A stretch of DNA of 57,568 bases, filler included, from Platydemus manokwari (lineage: Eukaryota): assembly GCA_037951405.1 (NCBI GenBank). It is 5 parts of 5 records of this genome, joined end to end, with 100 filler letters (N's around TTAATTAATTAA, not from the genome) between each part and the next. Parts side by side here need not be neighbours in the genome. Positions count along the whole stretch, not along the records: positions 37,029 to 46,485 come from JBBMOY011247652.1; 4 more parts are not named here. One strand, 5' to 3'. The notes below the pieces were generated by a model that did no database searches, was not told where the DNA came from, and was given only the letters and a program-made list of their open reading frames with translations. The position numbers were made by a program, and so were the translations under genes. Positions 35,848 to 46,485 of this stretch are shown piece after piece. Within the stretch, counting starts at the first letter, position 1. Every line of letters begins with the position of its first letter.

Positions 35848-38800
35848 TTAATAAAAAAAATATTGTAATAAGAACAAATGATTTGGAATTTGCACTGAGG
35901 AAAGACAGGAAAGAATGAAATGCAATTGATCACACCTCTTGATCATATATCTTTTAATCACACGAAGTTTTGCATTTGAAATCTTATTAAACAATGTTCC
36001 ACAATGCAATGTAGTTTTCGAATGGATAAATTTATAACAACCGATTTCCCTCAGATTATTATAGACACTTTTGATATCGATTTTAAATTTTATAGAAATG
36101 ATATTTATAAAATTAACATTGACACACAGAATTCCACAATTGATAGTGGAACATGGAATATGAGAGATGAAATAAAATGATTTCTTCAAACAAAAAATTT
36201 AAAAATTTAAATAAATTTCAAGAATAAAATGAATAATTACAAATTAGTTACGTGCCGAATTTGATTTATGTAAGCAATGCCGTATGGACTTTTGATTGGG
36301 TACTGCGGATACGTCTGTCCATCTGATTAGTTAATCACAAATCTAAAAAGCATGCAATTGTTATCATTAATTGCCTCTGTCAAACTCATTAATAATACTT
36401 TGCGTTGATTCTTTTTGCATTTCTGAATTATTTATCGTAGCTACTGTGCTAAGTTTATTGGTCACCTATCGTTTCTCTTGGATATTTCACCTGACTCAAA
36501 CAACCTTTCTAAATATACTGTAACAATAATTTCTTATTAATTGATGGTATAATTATCTTGCCAATAGGTGACTTCCGAAAGATACTTTGAGGTACTAAAG
36601 TGACAAAACTGCTTATCATGCTGCCATAGTTATCAATAGTTTTTCTCTAGTGTTTTTATATTTTAGCATCCTGTTTCCATGATTTCTATAAAGAAAATTC
36701 TATTTTCTATTTATTATTTCCTGTTTCCCTGTTTCTCGTTAGATTAATTGAATTAATCCTTCATTTTTAAAGTATTCCTTATATTTAAAAGCTCCAGAAA
36801 ATCGTGATAAAAATATGTATAAAACTCAAAAAATATGATCTACTGTAAAACCCCGAGTATAAGCTGCAGCTAATACGTACATAACGGCAACATTTTTGAA
36901 TTGCAGCTAATATGATGTGCAGCTTATANNNNNNNNNNNNNNNNNNNNNNNNNNNNNNNNNNNNNNNNNNNNTTAATTAATTAANNNNNNNNNNNNNNNN
37001 NNNNNNNNNNNNNNNNNNNNNNNNNNNNGACATTAGAATTTAATGATTAAGTTATAGTTCAAATAAGTTGAAAGTGAATACATAGATCAAATTCAACATA
37101 CTTACAATTACAAATTAAATTTTAGTACAATTAATTAGACTAATGTGAGGGTGGTGCATGAGAAAAAATTATATAAAAGACCATTGAAACAATTAAATTG
37201 ATAAATCATGATTTAATAATGTTTTCTAAAACGATATTGTGCATCATATATGGTGAAAATAAAATTATTTTTTAATCGAGTGGAACACAATGTTGTAATA
37301 AAAATTCTCTTTAAGGAGTTGCTTTGCTAAGGTTAATGTAATGTTAATTGTGTTAAGCTATTCAATATGATATTTGCTACACACCTCTTTGAACTTTAAC
37401 TTTGCATGCTTCTTTATGAATAACTGAAATTAGAATTTTCTTTCTACACGATTCAATTTTCATATGGCATTCACTCTTATAGGTTACATCATCAGAACCA
37501 CATACTGGTACTTGATCGACTTTGGTACATACTTCTTCTGGATCAAGACATTTGCATCTGGTACCACTACCGTCTTCAGTCATTTCACACACTCCATTGA
37601 ATTCGCATTTAAAAAATTTGCACATATCTGTAAAACATTATTTTTTTAATGAAATTCTTATAAAGCAATCTTACCGCATCGGCCTTCATATTGTTTACCT
37701 ATGAACCTGTTGGCTTTACAGCTGACGATTTTCATTTCACATATATTTGTATAGGTGATTTCATCAGTTCCGCAAATAGTCGGGCTATCAGCTGAGCATT
37801 TATCTGTTGGACATTTACAATGTGGATATGGATGGGAAATACATGTTGCATATGACGGACATTTTTGATGTTTACAAAATTGCGATATAGATTGACTTAT
37901 TTCATCTTGTTGAACATCAGTTTTTTCTGATTTACAATAAAGACTGAATTAATCTACTGTATATAAGCATGATACAAGTTATTTAATTGTCAAACTACCA
38001 TATTTAGAGTCAGTGAAATGATTATTTCAAATGTTTTCAAATATAATCACACTATTTTATTTTTATAAAGCAGATACATTCCGCAAGTAATCGCTTAGAA
38101 AAATCTCTAATTTTAAAGATAAATGTAAGAATATGCTCCTCATTATCTAATTATTTTATTAAAAACTCATAAATATACGTCTATGAACCTTCATCAAAAT
38201 ACTGATATATTATCATTTATAGTTGCTTTTAGATCTTTGCAGATTCAAGGACATATTTGACGTTTAGAACCAAGATTAAATTGAGAGCTCACATAAATCA
38301 TATTATATTGGAAAGAGTAATAGAGATTTTTATTTTGTAAATAATTGGTCACAAGGACCTAATCAAAACCTAATCACCTATCATAAAGATTTATAATATG
38401 TATGTGTATAAATATCTTACCATTTTGCTTTATTACCATTGATCTATCACACTTGTAAATTTGGGAAATTTTGATAGACCTTTGTAAAATACATTCTTGG
38501 CGTTTCATATGACATTCTGATTCGTAAAACATGCCATCACTACCACAAATTCGATTTTCTTTTAATCCCGATGTGCATTGCTTCGTAGAACAATGACATA
38601 CAGCTGTCGGTGGATTGCCAGGCCATCTTTGACATAGAGCTCCAAATTTACAATCAAGCTTACTACAAGGGTCATTGTTTTGAATAAGCATACCAGTATC
38701 ACCTGTAACCAGTTATAATTCAGATAATAAAATAAAAATTCAAAAATTAATGTTTACCGTTAATATACGCACTTATTCTTTTTTCAAAAGATCCATCTCC

Positions 38801-39166
38801 GAATTCAATAATGAATTTCAAATCAAAGAAATTTGGCACATTTGTTTTTTCCAAATAGATAATATAATCATCTCCTGATTTCGGTTTTATTTTACAGTCT
38901 TTGATGTACTTTATTTTTCGAACCAAAATCAAATGATAATCATTGTTGTGACTTATCTTTTTAACTGCATTAATTAATTCGAATCCTTTTAGAATTTTTA
39001 TCACCGAAACAACAATATCATTGTTTTCCAAATTTAAGATACGTCCAACGATGATCAAATCTGAATTTCTGATTTTGTCTCGGAATCCGATCGTTAAATC
39101 ACACTCGTTGACTTCGACATTTCCACTTACAAAAGAAAGTAAAAAACAAAATACCACCAGCATCAT
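35848..39166 (-). CDS. Secreted agrin-like protein: signal peptide, NtA-like domain, three follistatin/Kazal domains, unique C-terminus (model 530 aa)
   Basis: Exons (minus) 39166-38758, 38702-38421, 37926-37675, 37627-37385, then across a linker 36322-36252 and 36183-35848; phases are consistent (1593 nt). Signal MMLVVFCFLLSFVSG; NtA-like NSDLIIVGRI..VSVIKILKG; Kazal motifs ICGSDGMFYESEC, ICGTDEITYTNIC, VCGSDDVTYKSEC. The last two exons are less certain. Confidence 0.8.
36841..36928. mobile_element. pogo/Tc2-like MITE truncated at the assembly gap
   Basis: TA-CTGTAAAACCCCGAGTATAAGCTGCA terminus; TATAAGCTGCA (36858-36868) is inverted at 36918-36928, immediately before the Ns. Confidence 0.6.
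36929..37028. other. Artificial assembly linker
   Basis: N44-TTAATTAATTAA-N44. Confidence 0.97.
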
Positions 39167-42100
39167 AGTTATCGGATCGGATGCTGAAGAACTCAGTGAG
39201 TAATTGTATTGCGCAGATAAATGAAATCGATTTTAGAGTTGACGTAGATAATGGCCTGTATCAATAATACAATGTCGATAAACACAATCAATTCATTGCG
39301 ATGATATCAGCATGCTGATATTTCTTGGTATACTCATATGATACACGTGTTGTGATGGTGTGCTGACATAATTAAAATATGTGCTTTATTTTTGAATACT
39401 CATGAGAAAGCTATGCTAATGCCAAACCTTACCGACCTTAACGATTTAATTTCAAAAGAATTTAATATTTTCTTATTGTGTATAAATAAATTGAACTAAT
39501 TAAAGTTAAATATCTGATAATTTATTTTATGTAATTTGATATGTATATGAAGAATATATCTATATAATTATTTTAAATATTTTTTGTAGAACAGATTATT
39601 AGAGCTAAAAATGTGTGGTAAATTTGAAATACTATAGGAGATAATTGCCCTTTAATTGAATATGTATGTTAGAGATTAATCTTCCTGATATAATTCATAA
39701 TTTCCTCAATTAAAATAAACGTCTACAACCATTTTTAATTATATTTATGATATATTTTCCTAATAAAAACTCCGTTTTATAACTTTTTTGATAAAAATAA
39801 TAATGTTATATTTGTAAATGTGTAACATGAACTCTGTGACCAATAATATAGTATTTGCTTAAAGTCTGAGCTTCTATTGTGGTTCTTTTCTAAAATACAT
39901 TTAATGTTACCATTCAAAACCAGTTCATTGCGGTTATTAGATATGCAAAAATCTGAATGATTCTTTTGGAAATATTCCTTTACAAAATATCGAATCTGAT
40001 TTTATTCTGACCACTGGTCTTTTATAGTCGATAACTCATTTCATTATTTCCGCCATGGTTTTTAAAATTTTTTGTTTTTCTGCTTAAATTTGAATTACAA
40101 TTTTGAGTATTGTACATTGGCTTTATTTAGATTGTACAAACTGTTATCTTGCAATAACTTTGTATATCTAGAGTTAATAAATAATCTAACATAATAGATA
40201 TCAATGTATTTTGTGGTTATTGTACTCTTATTTATGAAATATGTTTCGAAATGATAAATGTTGAGCGAAGTGGTCTGCTTCAAATAAACTTGCCTTATTA
40301 GTTAAAAAAACAAGAGATGGTGGTAAAATATTAATAGTATGCGGAAACCAAACGATTTGAATTTCACACAAACTGAATTATAATTTTGTAAAGACTCTAC
40401 AATATAACAACCAACACTATAACTGAAATCACTAGAGAGCTTAATATCCTATCAAAGATATTTTTTGTACTTGCAGACGTGATATAAATAAAGAGACTTT
40501 ATATCTTATAGACTAATAAGTATTTGATTATTTGAAATTTCTTTGATAGATGAAATGGTCAGCAAAATTTAGGTCTCGGTAAATATCAAATGTCCAGATG
40601 CCAATATAAGGCTTTACATTTTGGTCGACTAGAGAGATGACATGCTTTCTCGTATGGTTTTCTATTGGTTTTGCATTACCCATTCATACCAACCACATAG
40701 GTGATTCACGTAATATTAACTTCATGTTGTTAATTCTGAATATTTCTGTTGATCTATGTGTAAAATTACCTGTGACAAATATTTATACTTTCACACTGTT
40801 GTTATTCACTTGAACTAGGCTCACTAATCTTATTCAATGCCACTGTAATCATCTGATTCGCAGGAATAATTTTTGTGCACATCTTTTGCTTCTCAGGGTT
40901 CATTTTCTATCGTCTTCTCCAAGTACACTATCGAGGACTTCAAGTCATTTGACTTTCTGACTTGATCGTAGAGGCAATTCTTCAATCAAGTTTCGCCTCT
41001 GGCTATTACATCATCTTCGTTGGAACTGAGTTAGCTATAGTCTTAATTCAAAACTGTATATGCTATTTATATTCTCTTTTCCTTTTTGCTGAACTTTCAT
41101 ACACTCAAATTATCTGACTGATTCACCGAAACTCAAACCATTGGCTGTTGTATATATCCTCTTCCAAATATCATGGTAACTTCTTGACACTATTCTTTGC
41201 CATTTGTTACATAAAAGCAGGTTTCTTGATTTATAAATCTCACCTTGAAGACTTACCAAATCAATTTTACATAATTGATTTTGGGATGTTTGTGATACAA
41301 TGTTCTACTTAATTTTAAACTACCAATTCTATCAAAAAGCTCTTAGATCCCAGATTAACATCGTTCTCTCTGATACCATTGGGAAGTGAAAGATTAATTC
41401 CGGGTAACAGTCTTGTTACCTGCGGAATAAATAAATTTATCTTTCAGAACTCCTTGATGAATCTTTATTGGCCATTCTTGATCTCTTTCTAATGGTAGTT
41501 GTGGACTACGATGGATGACAGAAGAATATACAATACAATCAATCACCCACACTTATCATATATTAACGAGGAAACATGAAGTGATTAGGATGACAGCCAT
41601 ACATTCATTGTACTGGATTGAATCACTAAGCTGCGAAAATCAAGAAAGCATTATAATGGGTCAATTCGCATATTTTACCAAATGAAACGAGCAAAAAATG
41701 GCGGGTTAAAATAGAGGGAGCATTAAATATGCCTCCGAGAAAATATATACCACGATTTCTTTCATTCTTATCAACAAAAACTTACAATAAATGGTTCCCA
41801 TTAAGAAAGGAGTACTACAGTGGAACCCAAGAAAATCAAAGACACATCAAATCTGCTGAGACAATGTTTTATACAATCGTATCAATTAAACTGGACTAAT
41901 CAAATAAAAAATGGACACTATAGCAGATACTCAGGATCTATTATTCCACTGTGGTCAAGAGTAGTTTTTAGTGGGGACCTAACTATTGGTGAATTCACAT
42001 TTATTCAAAAGAATATAGAAAATACGCAGACCACCAAAATGCGATAAAATAAATTGGTCCAACTGGACTGTGAAATTGTTAGCTTTTGTTATAAGGGTTC

Positions 42101-43289
42101 TCGGAACTTGGCAAACACAGACAAATGATACAACCCTAAAGAAATTAGAAATGAATAAGAAAATGATAAATAAAATAGCTCCTGCATGCATAAAGTCGAA
42201 TATAAATTTGTTACTAAAAATAAACATGGAAATAAAAATAGTAACAAATATACCAATAACATTAAATTATAACACATACGTCCAAACAAATTGCCTAAAT
42301 AAAATTATAAAATTTGATAGCATTATTAGTAAAGAGGGAGAAGTATTGACATTTCAATGCTATAAAACTTTAATCGCAATGTATTTCTTCTGAAGTATTT
42401 AATTTAACACTTTACTTAATAGAAAATGTATTCATAAAAAATTGTAATCACATATATAGGAATTAAAAAGAATGTTTAGTCAATTAAAAAAATTAAACAA
42501 ATATCCGAAAATACCTGTCGTCGAATAATATGTATATGAGCAGAAATTGTACAATTTTTACTAAAATTATTGATCCAAGTAAAAAATATCAGATAAGTGC
42601 AAATTCAAAACTTAAATAGGTAGGTCTGCACAATATTATATAAAACACAATTAACAAATAATACTGGAATCATTCAGTGAAAAAAATCAAATCCACTAAC
42701 GGATTTACAGAACAATATTAGCACCTAGGACACTTTTTAATATATCAAGATTTTTGTTTATATCGGTTTATTTAAGCAGAAGTTATCAAGTTGATATTTT
42801 TCTTGTAATCACAGTTAAATTGGCTTCGGTTATGAAATTACTAAACGGCTACAAATATTTTGATTTAAGGAATTCAAGTGTTGGTAGTCATAGTGTATAA
42901 ATCAATTTATTAATGTCAAAAATTTGGAGTTCTTAATGAAAGTCATAATATACTAAATTTACAGAATAAGCAAGTACAATCAAAGTTTGTTTACTATTTT
43001 TCTCAAAACCTTTAGATAACAAGTATTTGTGTATTCGTATTCGTCAAAAGATGATTATTAAAAACATTTATTTCTTTTTAGCTTTAATATTTAACTTTAA
43101 TGTAGGCTTTTTCATTCACATAGAGCTGATTATAACTTATAATTAAGTGCTTGTAAATAAGTAAATATTTAATAAATCTCAACTCTTTGGATTTTGATTT
43201 TAAACATACACGATTCGGTTAAATTTAAAACACTTTGTTTTAATATACATTAAATTAAATATTCAAATAATTTAAAAACGTTTTGTAAA

Positions 43290-44539
43290 ATGTCTGGAGT
43301 TGAAGCAAAATTAATTAAGCAAATTGAGGTTTATTTTTCAAAAGTTTATCTGTTATTAATTAAACAATTTTAGTATTATTTTGGTGATATAAACTTAGCT
43401 AAGGATAAGCATTTAAAACAATTGATTGAAAACTCCGTTGATGGATGTAAGTGATTTAAAGCATCGTGTTCATTATATTTTTTAAATTGTCAGGGGTGTC
43501 ATTTGAAGAAATGCTTAAGTTTCCAAGACTAAAGAGTATTACTGAAGATAAAGAATTAATTAAGAGTACTATTCAAAATTCCTCATCTTCTATTGTCGAA
43601 GCCAATGATGATGGTATTAGACGCCTTTCTTCTGTTCTTCCAGAAAGTCTTCAAGAGCTAGCTGATAAGCATTTAGACAAAAGTGTTTACGTCAAGGGAT
43701 TCTCAAACAAGGAATTACTTGATAATATTATTGAATATCTTGAAACTCACGGTGGACCCATAATGAATGTACATATGAGACGAGTACCAAAAGACAAATC
43801 ATTTAAAGGCAGTGTATTTGCTATATTCAAGGCTATTGAAGACGCAGAAAAATTTCTTTCCAATACAGATGCCGAAAAATTTAATGGTAACGATATGATA
43901 AGAATGTTGCAGTAAGAATTTGGATGAAATTTTGATTAATCTTATTGAGTGTTTAGAAAAGATTATTTAAATATTAAGAAAACCGAACACGAAGAAAGAC
44001 ACAAGGAAAAGGAAATCAGACAAAAGGAATCTATGGCAGCTAAAGAAGCTCTTCTTCAATCAAGAATGACAAAGGGTGCCCTCATTGAACTTTCATTTGT
44101 TGAAAAAGCAGAATCAGAATCTGCAAATGGAGACTTTTCAGACCCAAGAAACGAAAGAGTAGCCACAAAGAATTTAAAAACATGGTTAACTGAACTTTTA
44201 ATTGACATTGCACAAGTATCTTGGGTTGAATTCTTTCCAATTTCCGGAAAAATTGTAGTCCGATTGAATAAGGAAAATAGCGCACAATTAGCTTTGGAAA
44301 AACTTTATCAATCTGAACATGGTGTTGAAAATAAACAAGGATTTAATTACCAAACTTATGAATTTTCTGGTATTATTCTCACAGATGAAAAAGAAAAGGA
44401 TTATTGGAGAAATATTTTAAGTGAACAAGGTCAAAAGAGAGCTAGGGTATGTTTTTTATAAATAAGATTCATCTATTATTTATTTTTTTAGAAAAATGGA
44501 AAAAATTCAGGTCCAGCAAGAAAGAAAATGCGCAGATAA
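43290..44539 (+). CDS. SSB: La protein (La motif, RRM1, RRM2, C-terminal NLS), 5 exons, 355 aa
   Basis: Exons 43290-43328, 43374-43446, 43494-43911, 43957-44446, 44492-44539; introns 45-47 nt, GT-AG. Motifs KQIEYYFGDINL, GWVSFEEMLKF, SVYVKGF, FKGSVFAIF, EKDYWRNI, PARKKMRR*. AATAAA at 44556-44561. Confidence 0.95.
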
Positions 44540-44781
44540 AAAATTGTTTATCATTAATAAATTATTATTAAATTTTACTTTATTTTCTGTTTTTTATGAC
44601 GTTTTAATAATCTGTTAATTTGATTTATCAGGAGATGAATACATGCATAGTTCTAGCAAATACATACGTGTTAAACTACAGAGTTGGCCAATGAAATTCT
44701 TTGAATTTGCAGAATTGTTTTACATTTGCTTGAGCATCAGTAATTTCCTCACGATATTTTCATATTTTTAGTATTTTTCTT

Positions 44782-45129
44782 ATGGATTGCTTTTTGAAAA
44801 ACATTAGAATTAAAGTTAATAATGCAGTAGATGTAATAATGAATAGTCCAGCTTTGCGTAAAAGTAAGAAATGTTAATTATTTTTCAACAATTAACTCTA
44901 TTATGACTTCAATTTTTATTGATATTTTAATGATATTAAAATTTTATTAAATTTGTATTGATAAATTAATTAAAAACAAGCCGAATGTTTTATTTAACTA
45001 AATTTCATAGAACGATCTGAGTCGTCTGAAAATTCGGTGGAAAATGAAAAGTACATTTCACTGGATACAACAGAAATTGCAATTATGGATAATGCTAAAA
45101 CTCTTAATGATATAGACGAAGCTTTTAAG
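44782..45129 (+). CDS. First two coding exons of an unidentified gene directly downstream of La (partial)
   Basis: 44782-44863 MDCFLKNIRIKVNNAVDVIMNSPALRK + A|gtaaga; acceptor tttcatag; 45011-45129 KRSESSENSVENEKYISLDTTEIAIMDNAKTLNDIDEAFK|gtattc. Phases match. Continuation not located before the 46486 linker. Confidence 0.55.
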
Positions 45130-46485
45130 GTATTCGAAATATTTTTTCTCTATGAAGACTGTTTAAGTTTTTGATGAATTAGAATTTAAAAATTTAAGTT
45201 ACACTTTAGCGTTGGAATTCGTTTTATTGAAGTGATTTTTGGTATTTTTTAAATTGTTTCGATTTGTATTTTTTTTTACCATACTATGATTTCAGAAATA
45301 TTTAAAAAATAATCTAATATTAAAAATAAGTAAGACTTATTAATTTGATAATTTTTTATTGACTCTGCTTAAACTGAGTTAGATTTTAAATACTTAAAAA
45401 CCTTAGTACTCAAACACCAAACAAGAATAATTGCAACATAAACAAAGTGATTGTATTTTCCGTTGGTAAGTAACAGCAGTTATGTGTCAAATCTGATTCA
45501 AAACACTCAATAATCCACAGGCAAAGTTGGAAATGTTTAATTAATAGAACCAACGAACAGGTTGTAGCAATAATTTAATTAGCTAAGCATCATCTCCACT
45601 ACAGATTTGATAAAGCCATCATTTGCGTTTTTGATTTTGATCCAATTAACTGAAGACATAACAATCCCGAAAATACATTACGCTATTTTTAGAAATTCTC
45701 TTAAGTATATATCTTAAAAAAATATTATTAGAGAATTTGAAATAAACAATTGATTTTATTTTTAAATTTGTTGTCTTATCAATTTTAAAAGTTCTTGATT
45801 TATGAAAAATGATTTCGATTTGAACAGGAAATCTCATGTAGATGAAATCATAATTAAATAAAATAATTTGAATTATTTTATGTGAACAATCCAAGTTCAA
45901 TAATATATTGAACTGTCAAATTACTCGATCAACCTTATAGACTATTAATTAGTTCTGAGTTTGCATATTCATTTTCTCTTAATGTTCTCCTAATAGCAAA
46001 TATATGCATAAGGTTTATTTTTCTTATAAGTGAACAATGAAAAGAGAAATAATTTTACATCATCATCATAGCATATTTGTGTTTCTCCGTGAAAAGCTAG
46101 TAAAGCAGATGTTTATATTTTTACTAATTTCATGAAGAGTTTCTGTCAACTGGAAGACTAAATTCAAATAAGCTTTTTATTAATACCAGAAATATTGTGT
46201 TTTTTAATTATAAAATATATTATAAATGAATAAAAATTGTTACTGAGGAGATTTTCGATGAAAAATCAATGAATAATATGTTTAATTTTGTCCTACCATT
46301 TGGCAAGAATCACTGTTGATTGAATATGTTGAATTAAGAAAGCAAAAATGCAAATTATGGGACTATTAATTTCTCTCAATTTAAAAATCAGTATCACTTA
46401 AGGATGTAACAGATTAAAATTTATTCATTGTTTCGATATATTTATAATTTTTTGACTTCTCAAATATATATTTTGACCAATAAAA

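Follow-up and report, generated by a model that had tools for sequence, protein, structure and literature searches.

Spliced-leader (SL) trans-splicing has been reported in trematodes, cestodes, planarians and Macrostomum (PMC12582326), and operons resolved by SL trans-splicing are documented in flatworms (PMC12582326, PMC5832876, PMC8629364). Flatworm operon candidates are defined as same-strand genes lying no more than 200–300 bp apart, or up to 1 kb apart in Macrostomum (PMC5832876, PMC12582326, PMC8629364), and in Schistosoma mansoni there is SL evidence for 66 of the 139 candidates (PMC5832876). The distance between cistrons in S. mansoni averages 233 bp with a median of 99 bp (PMC12582326), and its mode in Macrostomum is near 100 bp (PMC8629364); flatworms have no SL that is specialised for downstream cistrons (PMC12582326). 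A literature search on SL trans-splicing in monogeneans yielded nothing useful.

The window, the whole stretch of DNA that was analysed, is 57,568 nucleotides long and is composed of five joined parts, one of which (positions 37029–46485, here called the piece) contains a gene for the RNA-binding protein La/SSB followed by an open reading frame (ORF) on the same + strand. From the La stop codon (44539) to the next ATG (44782) there are 242 nt, and the features of the locus are listed in Table 1. From the sequence, we tentatively read the two as an SL-type operon of La and the downstream ORF, and with low confidence we regard an operon as the most likely single mechanism. The pair falls within the published flatworm definition (same strand, at most 300 bp apart), on the condition that the second ORF is a gene. 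An earlier note on this DNA had proposed that La and the second gene form a dicistron; the proposal draws support from the shared strand, the 242-nt distance, the flatworm clade and a parallel in trematodes, but is held back by the purely statistical nature of the case for the ORF as a gene.

Table 1. Features of the La locus and its downstream ORF; positions are counted along the window.
Feature	Position	Strand	Description
La exon 1	43290–43328	+	ATG, 13 codons; donor GTTTAT; splice model checked
La exon 2	43374–43446	+	First part of La motif; Pfam La domain, E 1.2e-6
La exon 3	43494–43911	+	Remaining La motif and RRM1; Pfam RRM_1
La exon 4	43957–44446	+	Linker and RRM2/xRRM; Pfam RRM_3, E 4.5e-7
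La exon 5	44492–44539	+	Basic C-terminal tail KNGKNSGPARKKMRR; stop codon TAA at 44537–44539
AATAAA, likely La poly(A) signal	44556–44561	+	17 nt past the stop codon; by analogy with F. buski
T-rich tract	44562–44631	+	59% T, 16% GC; ends in acceptor-like TTTATCAG, AG 44630–44631
GC-richer non-coding block, possible promoter, outron or leader	44632–44745	+	114 nt, 32.5% GC
Pyrimidine-rich tract and putative trans- or cis-splice acceptor	44746–44771	+	TATTTTTAG; branch-point-like CTCAC at 44748–44752; AG 44770–44771
ORF exon 1	44782–44863	+	ATG, 27 codons and 1 base; donor GTAAGA at 44864
Putative ORF intron	44864–45010	+	147 nt, 15.6% GC; acceptor TTTCATAG
ORF exon 2	45011–45129	+	39 codons and 2 bases; weak donor GTATTC at 45130

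The La gene model spans 43290–44539 in five exons (1068 nt, 355 aa), with four introns of 45–47 nt each that have GT..AG ends and a GC content of 13–25%. The product carries the features of a genuine La/SSB protein, namely a La motif, RRM1, RRM2 (recognised as Pfam RRM_3) and a basic tail with KKMRR, and the model is complete and typical. The gene had been named as La in the earlier note, and the matches to Pfam La, RRM_1 and RRM_3 bear this out; the coordinates given there were likewise all correct when the sequence was re-read and the gene models were rebuilt by script.

An exhaustive protein search with La exon 3 alone as the query recovered 450 relatives at a cut-off of E≤0.001. The closest (P0001, 78% identity) is a 144-aa exon-level ORF on the Logan genomic contig L001 from run SRR33002330, and the next (P0002) is a 351-aa full-length La from a UniParc entry, 65% identical to the window La exon 3; the trematode La proteins of T. 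szidati and F. buski, at about 50% identity, rank after these two. Domain order in P0002 is the same as in the window La, whose tail can be aligned to the basic C-terminal ends of P0002 and the trematode La proteins. Contig L001 (positions 1–1245), from a related species with more GC-rich DNA, contains La exons 1–5 with intron positions identical to those in the window and introns of about 47–62 nt; it ends just before the La stop codon, placing the downstream region outside its coverage. A word search with La exon 4, which was limited by length, gave no matches.

In an ML tree of La, the sequences from the window, L001 and P0002 form a single clade with support of 100/100, sister to the trematodes (fork 82/74), and every named member of the enclosing clade (100/100) is a flatworm. 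The La tree thus places the organism among the flatworms and outside the trematodes, and narrows the earlier suggestion of a flatworm or nematode context accordingly. SL trans-splicing in this organism would be expected from its position among the flatworms.

In the operon reading, the La gene would be transcribed from its own upstream promoter region and would have a conventional 3' end with an AATAAA and a T-rich tract, with RNA polymerase II reading through the La poly(A) site. The La mRNA would be cleaved at about 44575–44590, and the downstream mRNA would be capped by SL trans-splicing at AG 44770–44771, 10 nt before the ATG and about 190 nt beyond the point at which La should be cleaved. 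That the two are co-transcribed, that an SL is added and which acceptor serves are steps that we infer. Rfam and tRNA scans found no SL RNA gene, other RNA family or tRNA in the piece.

The spacer is tripartite, consisting of 44540–44631, 44632–44745 and 44746–44781. The first part (14% GC, 54% T) comprises the La 3' UTR and the T-rich tract, and the last (58% T) has its CTCAC motif 20 nt before AG 44770–44771. The T-rich tract is a real outlier, with 59% T against a background of 36%, a value that only 0.27% of 70-nt windows of the same strand reach. Taken alone, neither the AATAAA nor the acceptor-like AGs exceed chance frequency by much in DNA of 27% GC: at 3.3 acceptor-like sites per kb and strand, a 242-nt spacer should have about 0.8, and two are observed, while this strand has 27 copies of AATAAA in 9.5 kb. 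The earlier note had remarked that no consensus donor lies in between, which holds for the interval from the AATAAA to the AG, but the spacer does include a donor-like GTTTAT at 44546–44551, the same hexamer as the La intron 1 donor, which precedes the AATAAA. No strong donor was found in the spacer. A mini-intron at 44740–44771 (GTAATT...AG) was considered and rejected; at 32 nt it is below any intron length here (45–147 nt).

The middle part of the spacer bears on a second reading, possible if doubtful, in which La and the ORF are two independent genes, with the second transcribed from a small promoter in 44632–44745 and perhaps SL trans-spliced at AG 44771 as a monocistron. The earlier note had seen almost no room for a promoter, which is overstated, as there is a 114-nt block of 32.5% GC between the two AGs. 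Within the tripartite spacer, exon- or promoter-like GC content (0.325) is confined to this block, together with the motif GGCCAATGA at 44686–44694, which contains a CCAAT at 44688–44692, about 94 nt before the ATG. The block is, as far as its sequence goes, equally compatible with a compact independent promoter. It also contains three ATGs, at 44635, 44643 and 44691, and the ORF from 44643 scores negative on codons. Among S. mansoni same-strand pairs no more than 200 bp apart, about half are without SL evidence (PMC5832876), and flatworm genes that accept an SL are mostly monocistronic (PMC12582326, PMC5832876); the piece is gene-dense and the La introns are only 45–47 nt, which makes short regulatory regions plausible. 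Set against these points, a single CCAAT in 242 nt on two strands is about what chance would give (approximately 0.4 expected, as a base-composition estimate), the spacer has no TATA-like motif, and the F. buski locus described below, with about 90 nt from poly(A) site to acceptor, shows that tight pairs led by La do occur.

The operon and the independent-promoter readings both require that the downstream ORF be a gene, and from its sequence it probably is a real coding gene. It has two exons joined in phase 1 and 67 codons; without splicing at 45130 it reads on to a stop codon at 45172–45174, with a product of 82 aa. The exons have 27% and 33% GC and the intron 15.6%, a value like those of the La introns (13–25%), and GC content falls from the first to the third codon position (GC1>GC2>GC3), the same gradient as in La. 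With La and the Kazal-domain exons upstream of it as the training set for a codon score model, the ORF scores +0.27 to +0.29 per codon, which is exceeded by one of 42 null open stretches, and exon 2 alone scores +0.36, above all 42; La itself scores 0.53 per codon, an in-sample value.

That there is no second gene, and that ORF 44782–45129 and the AGs are chance features of an AT-rich La 3' flank or intergenic DNA, is a reading that has to be weighed against these statistics, and we consider it unlikely. It gains from the searches, which found no homologue: with single exons or the open stretch as queries there was no Pfam match, no Atlas lead for exon 2 and no match in a word search that was limited by length. 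It gains also from the region after the ORF, where there is no credible poly(A) signal and nothing convincing as a third exon in 45130–46485, the end of the piece. The splice sites also speak for it, with a mediocre acceptor at 45010 (six of ten pyrimidines), a weak terminal donor (GTATTC) and acceptor-like sites as common as noted above (3.3 per kb). A comparable two-exon ORF was found once in 6.9 kb of presumed non-coding DNA; that null ORF, however, scores –0.15 per codon and lacks the exon/intron GC contrast, whereas the candidate scores +0.29 and has its 15.6% GC intron between exons of 27% and 33%. The codon-position gradient that mirrors La also counts against a chance origin, as does the rarity of such ORFs in shuffled sequence, a two-exon ATG ORF with at least 81 open codons having arisen in 0.5–0.75% of block shuffles of the 860-nt region, that is, in less than 1%. 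Neither repeats nor a transposon signature turned up when the surroundings of the locus were searched for repeats.

The gene neighbourhoods of La in trematodes provide a parallel for the operon reading. In F. buski (LUCM01001990.1; contig L004, 30902–31158), La is followed after 251 nt by a same-strand EZH2-family gene, the product of which matches Pfam Ezh2_MCSS, and the spacer contains an AATAAA and a TTTTATTTTATAG acceptor 18 nt before the ATG. GenBank calls the La protein of this contig 'Enhancer of zeste 1 (ENX-2)', apparently by mistake. A second F. buski locus (LUCM01002411.1; contig L006, 10001–11380) has an intronless La copy with a 341-aa model, an N-run and substitutions, and its match to the 3' UTR of the parent gives way to an A-rich tail about 14 nt past the AATAAA. 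This structure marks it as a processed retrocopy that records the poly(A) site of the La mRNA, and by this record polyadenylation of F. buski La takes place about 90 nt ahead of the acceptor of the EZH2-family gene. By the published rule of at most 300 bp, the F. buski pair is an operon candidate.

The other trematodes differ. In Calicophoron daubneyi (contig L003, 22161–31571), La and a 1032-aa EZH2-family gene are on the same strand but 9.4 kb apart, with a strong acceptor TTCTTCTTTTCAG 15 nt before the ATG of the latter; in T. szidati the 10 kb around La contain no EZH2-family gene, and the contig of E. caproni, which extends only about 1.8 kb beyond La, says little on synteny. La synteny, which the earlier note had suggested as a check, is thus found as a tight tandem led by La in F. 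buski, but not in C. daubneyi, with its 9.4 kb, or in T. szidati.

We also considered the downstream ORF as an EZH2 gene and rejected it: it has no BLASTP alignment to C. daubneyi exon 1 and no Pfam EZH2 match, and comparison by tblastx with the genes of F. buski and C. daubneyi produced only noise. The comparison is limited by the first exon of the trematode EZH2-family genes, in which the first 75 or so residues are unconserved even between F. buski and C. daubneyi. It is conceivable, but very improbable, that La heads an ancient flatworm dicistron, with the units in the window and in F. buski sharing an ancestral operon and the ORF being a fast-evolving EZH2-family N-terminus whose conserved exons lie beyond the piece. 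If so, an RNA chaperone and a Polycomb-type methyltransferase would be co-transcribed across deeply diverged flatworm lineages.

The two AGs of the spacer are not equally suited to either an operon or trans-splicing of a monocistron. The earlier note had preferred AG 44631, but a leader that begins after AG 44630–44631 would be 150 nt long and include three upstream ATGs, and we disfavour this AG as a functional acceptor. Use of AG 44770–44771 would give a leader of 10 nt with no upstream ATG and would resemble the trematode sites, 15–18 nt before their ATGs, and for this reason it is the likelier of the two; with its T-rich tract and branch-point-like CTCAC it looks usable. That AG 44630–44631 is instead an alternative acceptor for the last exon of La, joining exon 4 to 44632 and giving a tail (EMNTC...RVGQ and a stop, which reads just as in the earlier note) without the basic C-terminus, is scarcely credible, for although the phase fits (0 at the end of exon 4, with 20 open codons in frame from 44632) and the AG is preceded by a strongly T-rich tract, such splicing must skip a good acceptor (a 12-nt T-rich tract and AG at 44491) and pass the AATAAA, a basic tail is present in the C-terminally complete relatives (P0002 and the La proteins of F. 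buski, T. szidati and C. daubneyi), and a 20-codon open frame is unremarkable here.

Several other features of the piece may be mentioned. On this strand, the T-richness of the tract after La is equalled in one other stretch alone, 45205–45296 (+), which lies about 30 nt after the read-through stop codon at 45172–45174 and ends in TGATTTCAG with AG 45294–45295. It could be the 3' flank of the ORF gene or a pyrimidine tract that serves a further acceptor, although an exon opened by AG 45294–45295 would have just 15 codons and a negative codon score. At 37029–39166, on the – strand, there is a secreted multi-Kazal (follistatin/agrin-like) gene that runs off the left edge of the piece, with a signal-peptide-like first exon (ORF 38747–39166) and Kazal_2 exons at 38374–38691 and 37377–37625. 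Between this gene and La, the region 40600–42400 includes a 1.5-kb block of higher GC content (0.32–0.35) with a change in the sign of AT skew near 41450 and several ORFs of 50–107 aa in different frames with no Pfam match; a mobile element in decay, or exons that went unrecognised, could account for it.

If confirmed, the operon would be one more flatworm dicistron, in a lineage outside the trematodes, and one that is absent from the comparative study (PMC12582326); neither the operon supplements of that study nor PMC5832876 mentions La or EZH. Taken with the La/EZH2-family pair of F. buski, it would be a hint that La recurs as a first cistron. The interest is modest and lies in SL trans-splicing and in flatworm genome annotation, with no concept changed; for annotation, tight same-strand pairs are of note as being prone to chimeric gene models.

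Of the systems to which this locus can be likened, the SL2-type operons of C. elegans share the coupling of 3'-end formation to downstream trans-splicing and a spacer of about 100–200 nt that starts U-rich, but they are nematode and the window is flatworm. The SL operons of S. mansoni, cestodes and Macrostomum lignano (PMC5832876, PMC12582326, PMC8629364) are closer: like them, the window has a putative same-strand unit of two genes with 242 nt from stop codon to ATG, a conserved upstream gene with an AATAAA and T-rich 3' end, and a pyrimidine tract and AG just before the downstream ATG, while it differs in the GC-richer, CCAAT-containing block of its spacer and in a downstream ORF without a homologue. 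From the La/EZH2-family pair of trematodes, itself a candidate operon, the window is set apart by an ORF without similarity to EZH2-family exon 1, and within that group the C. daubneyi genes are spaced by 9.4 kb. In layout, the F. buski pair is nonetheless a near match to the window: La is upstream in both, the spacers are 251 nt and 242 nt, both have an AATAAA, and the acceptor lies 18 nt before the ATG in F. buski and 10 nt before it in the window.
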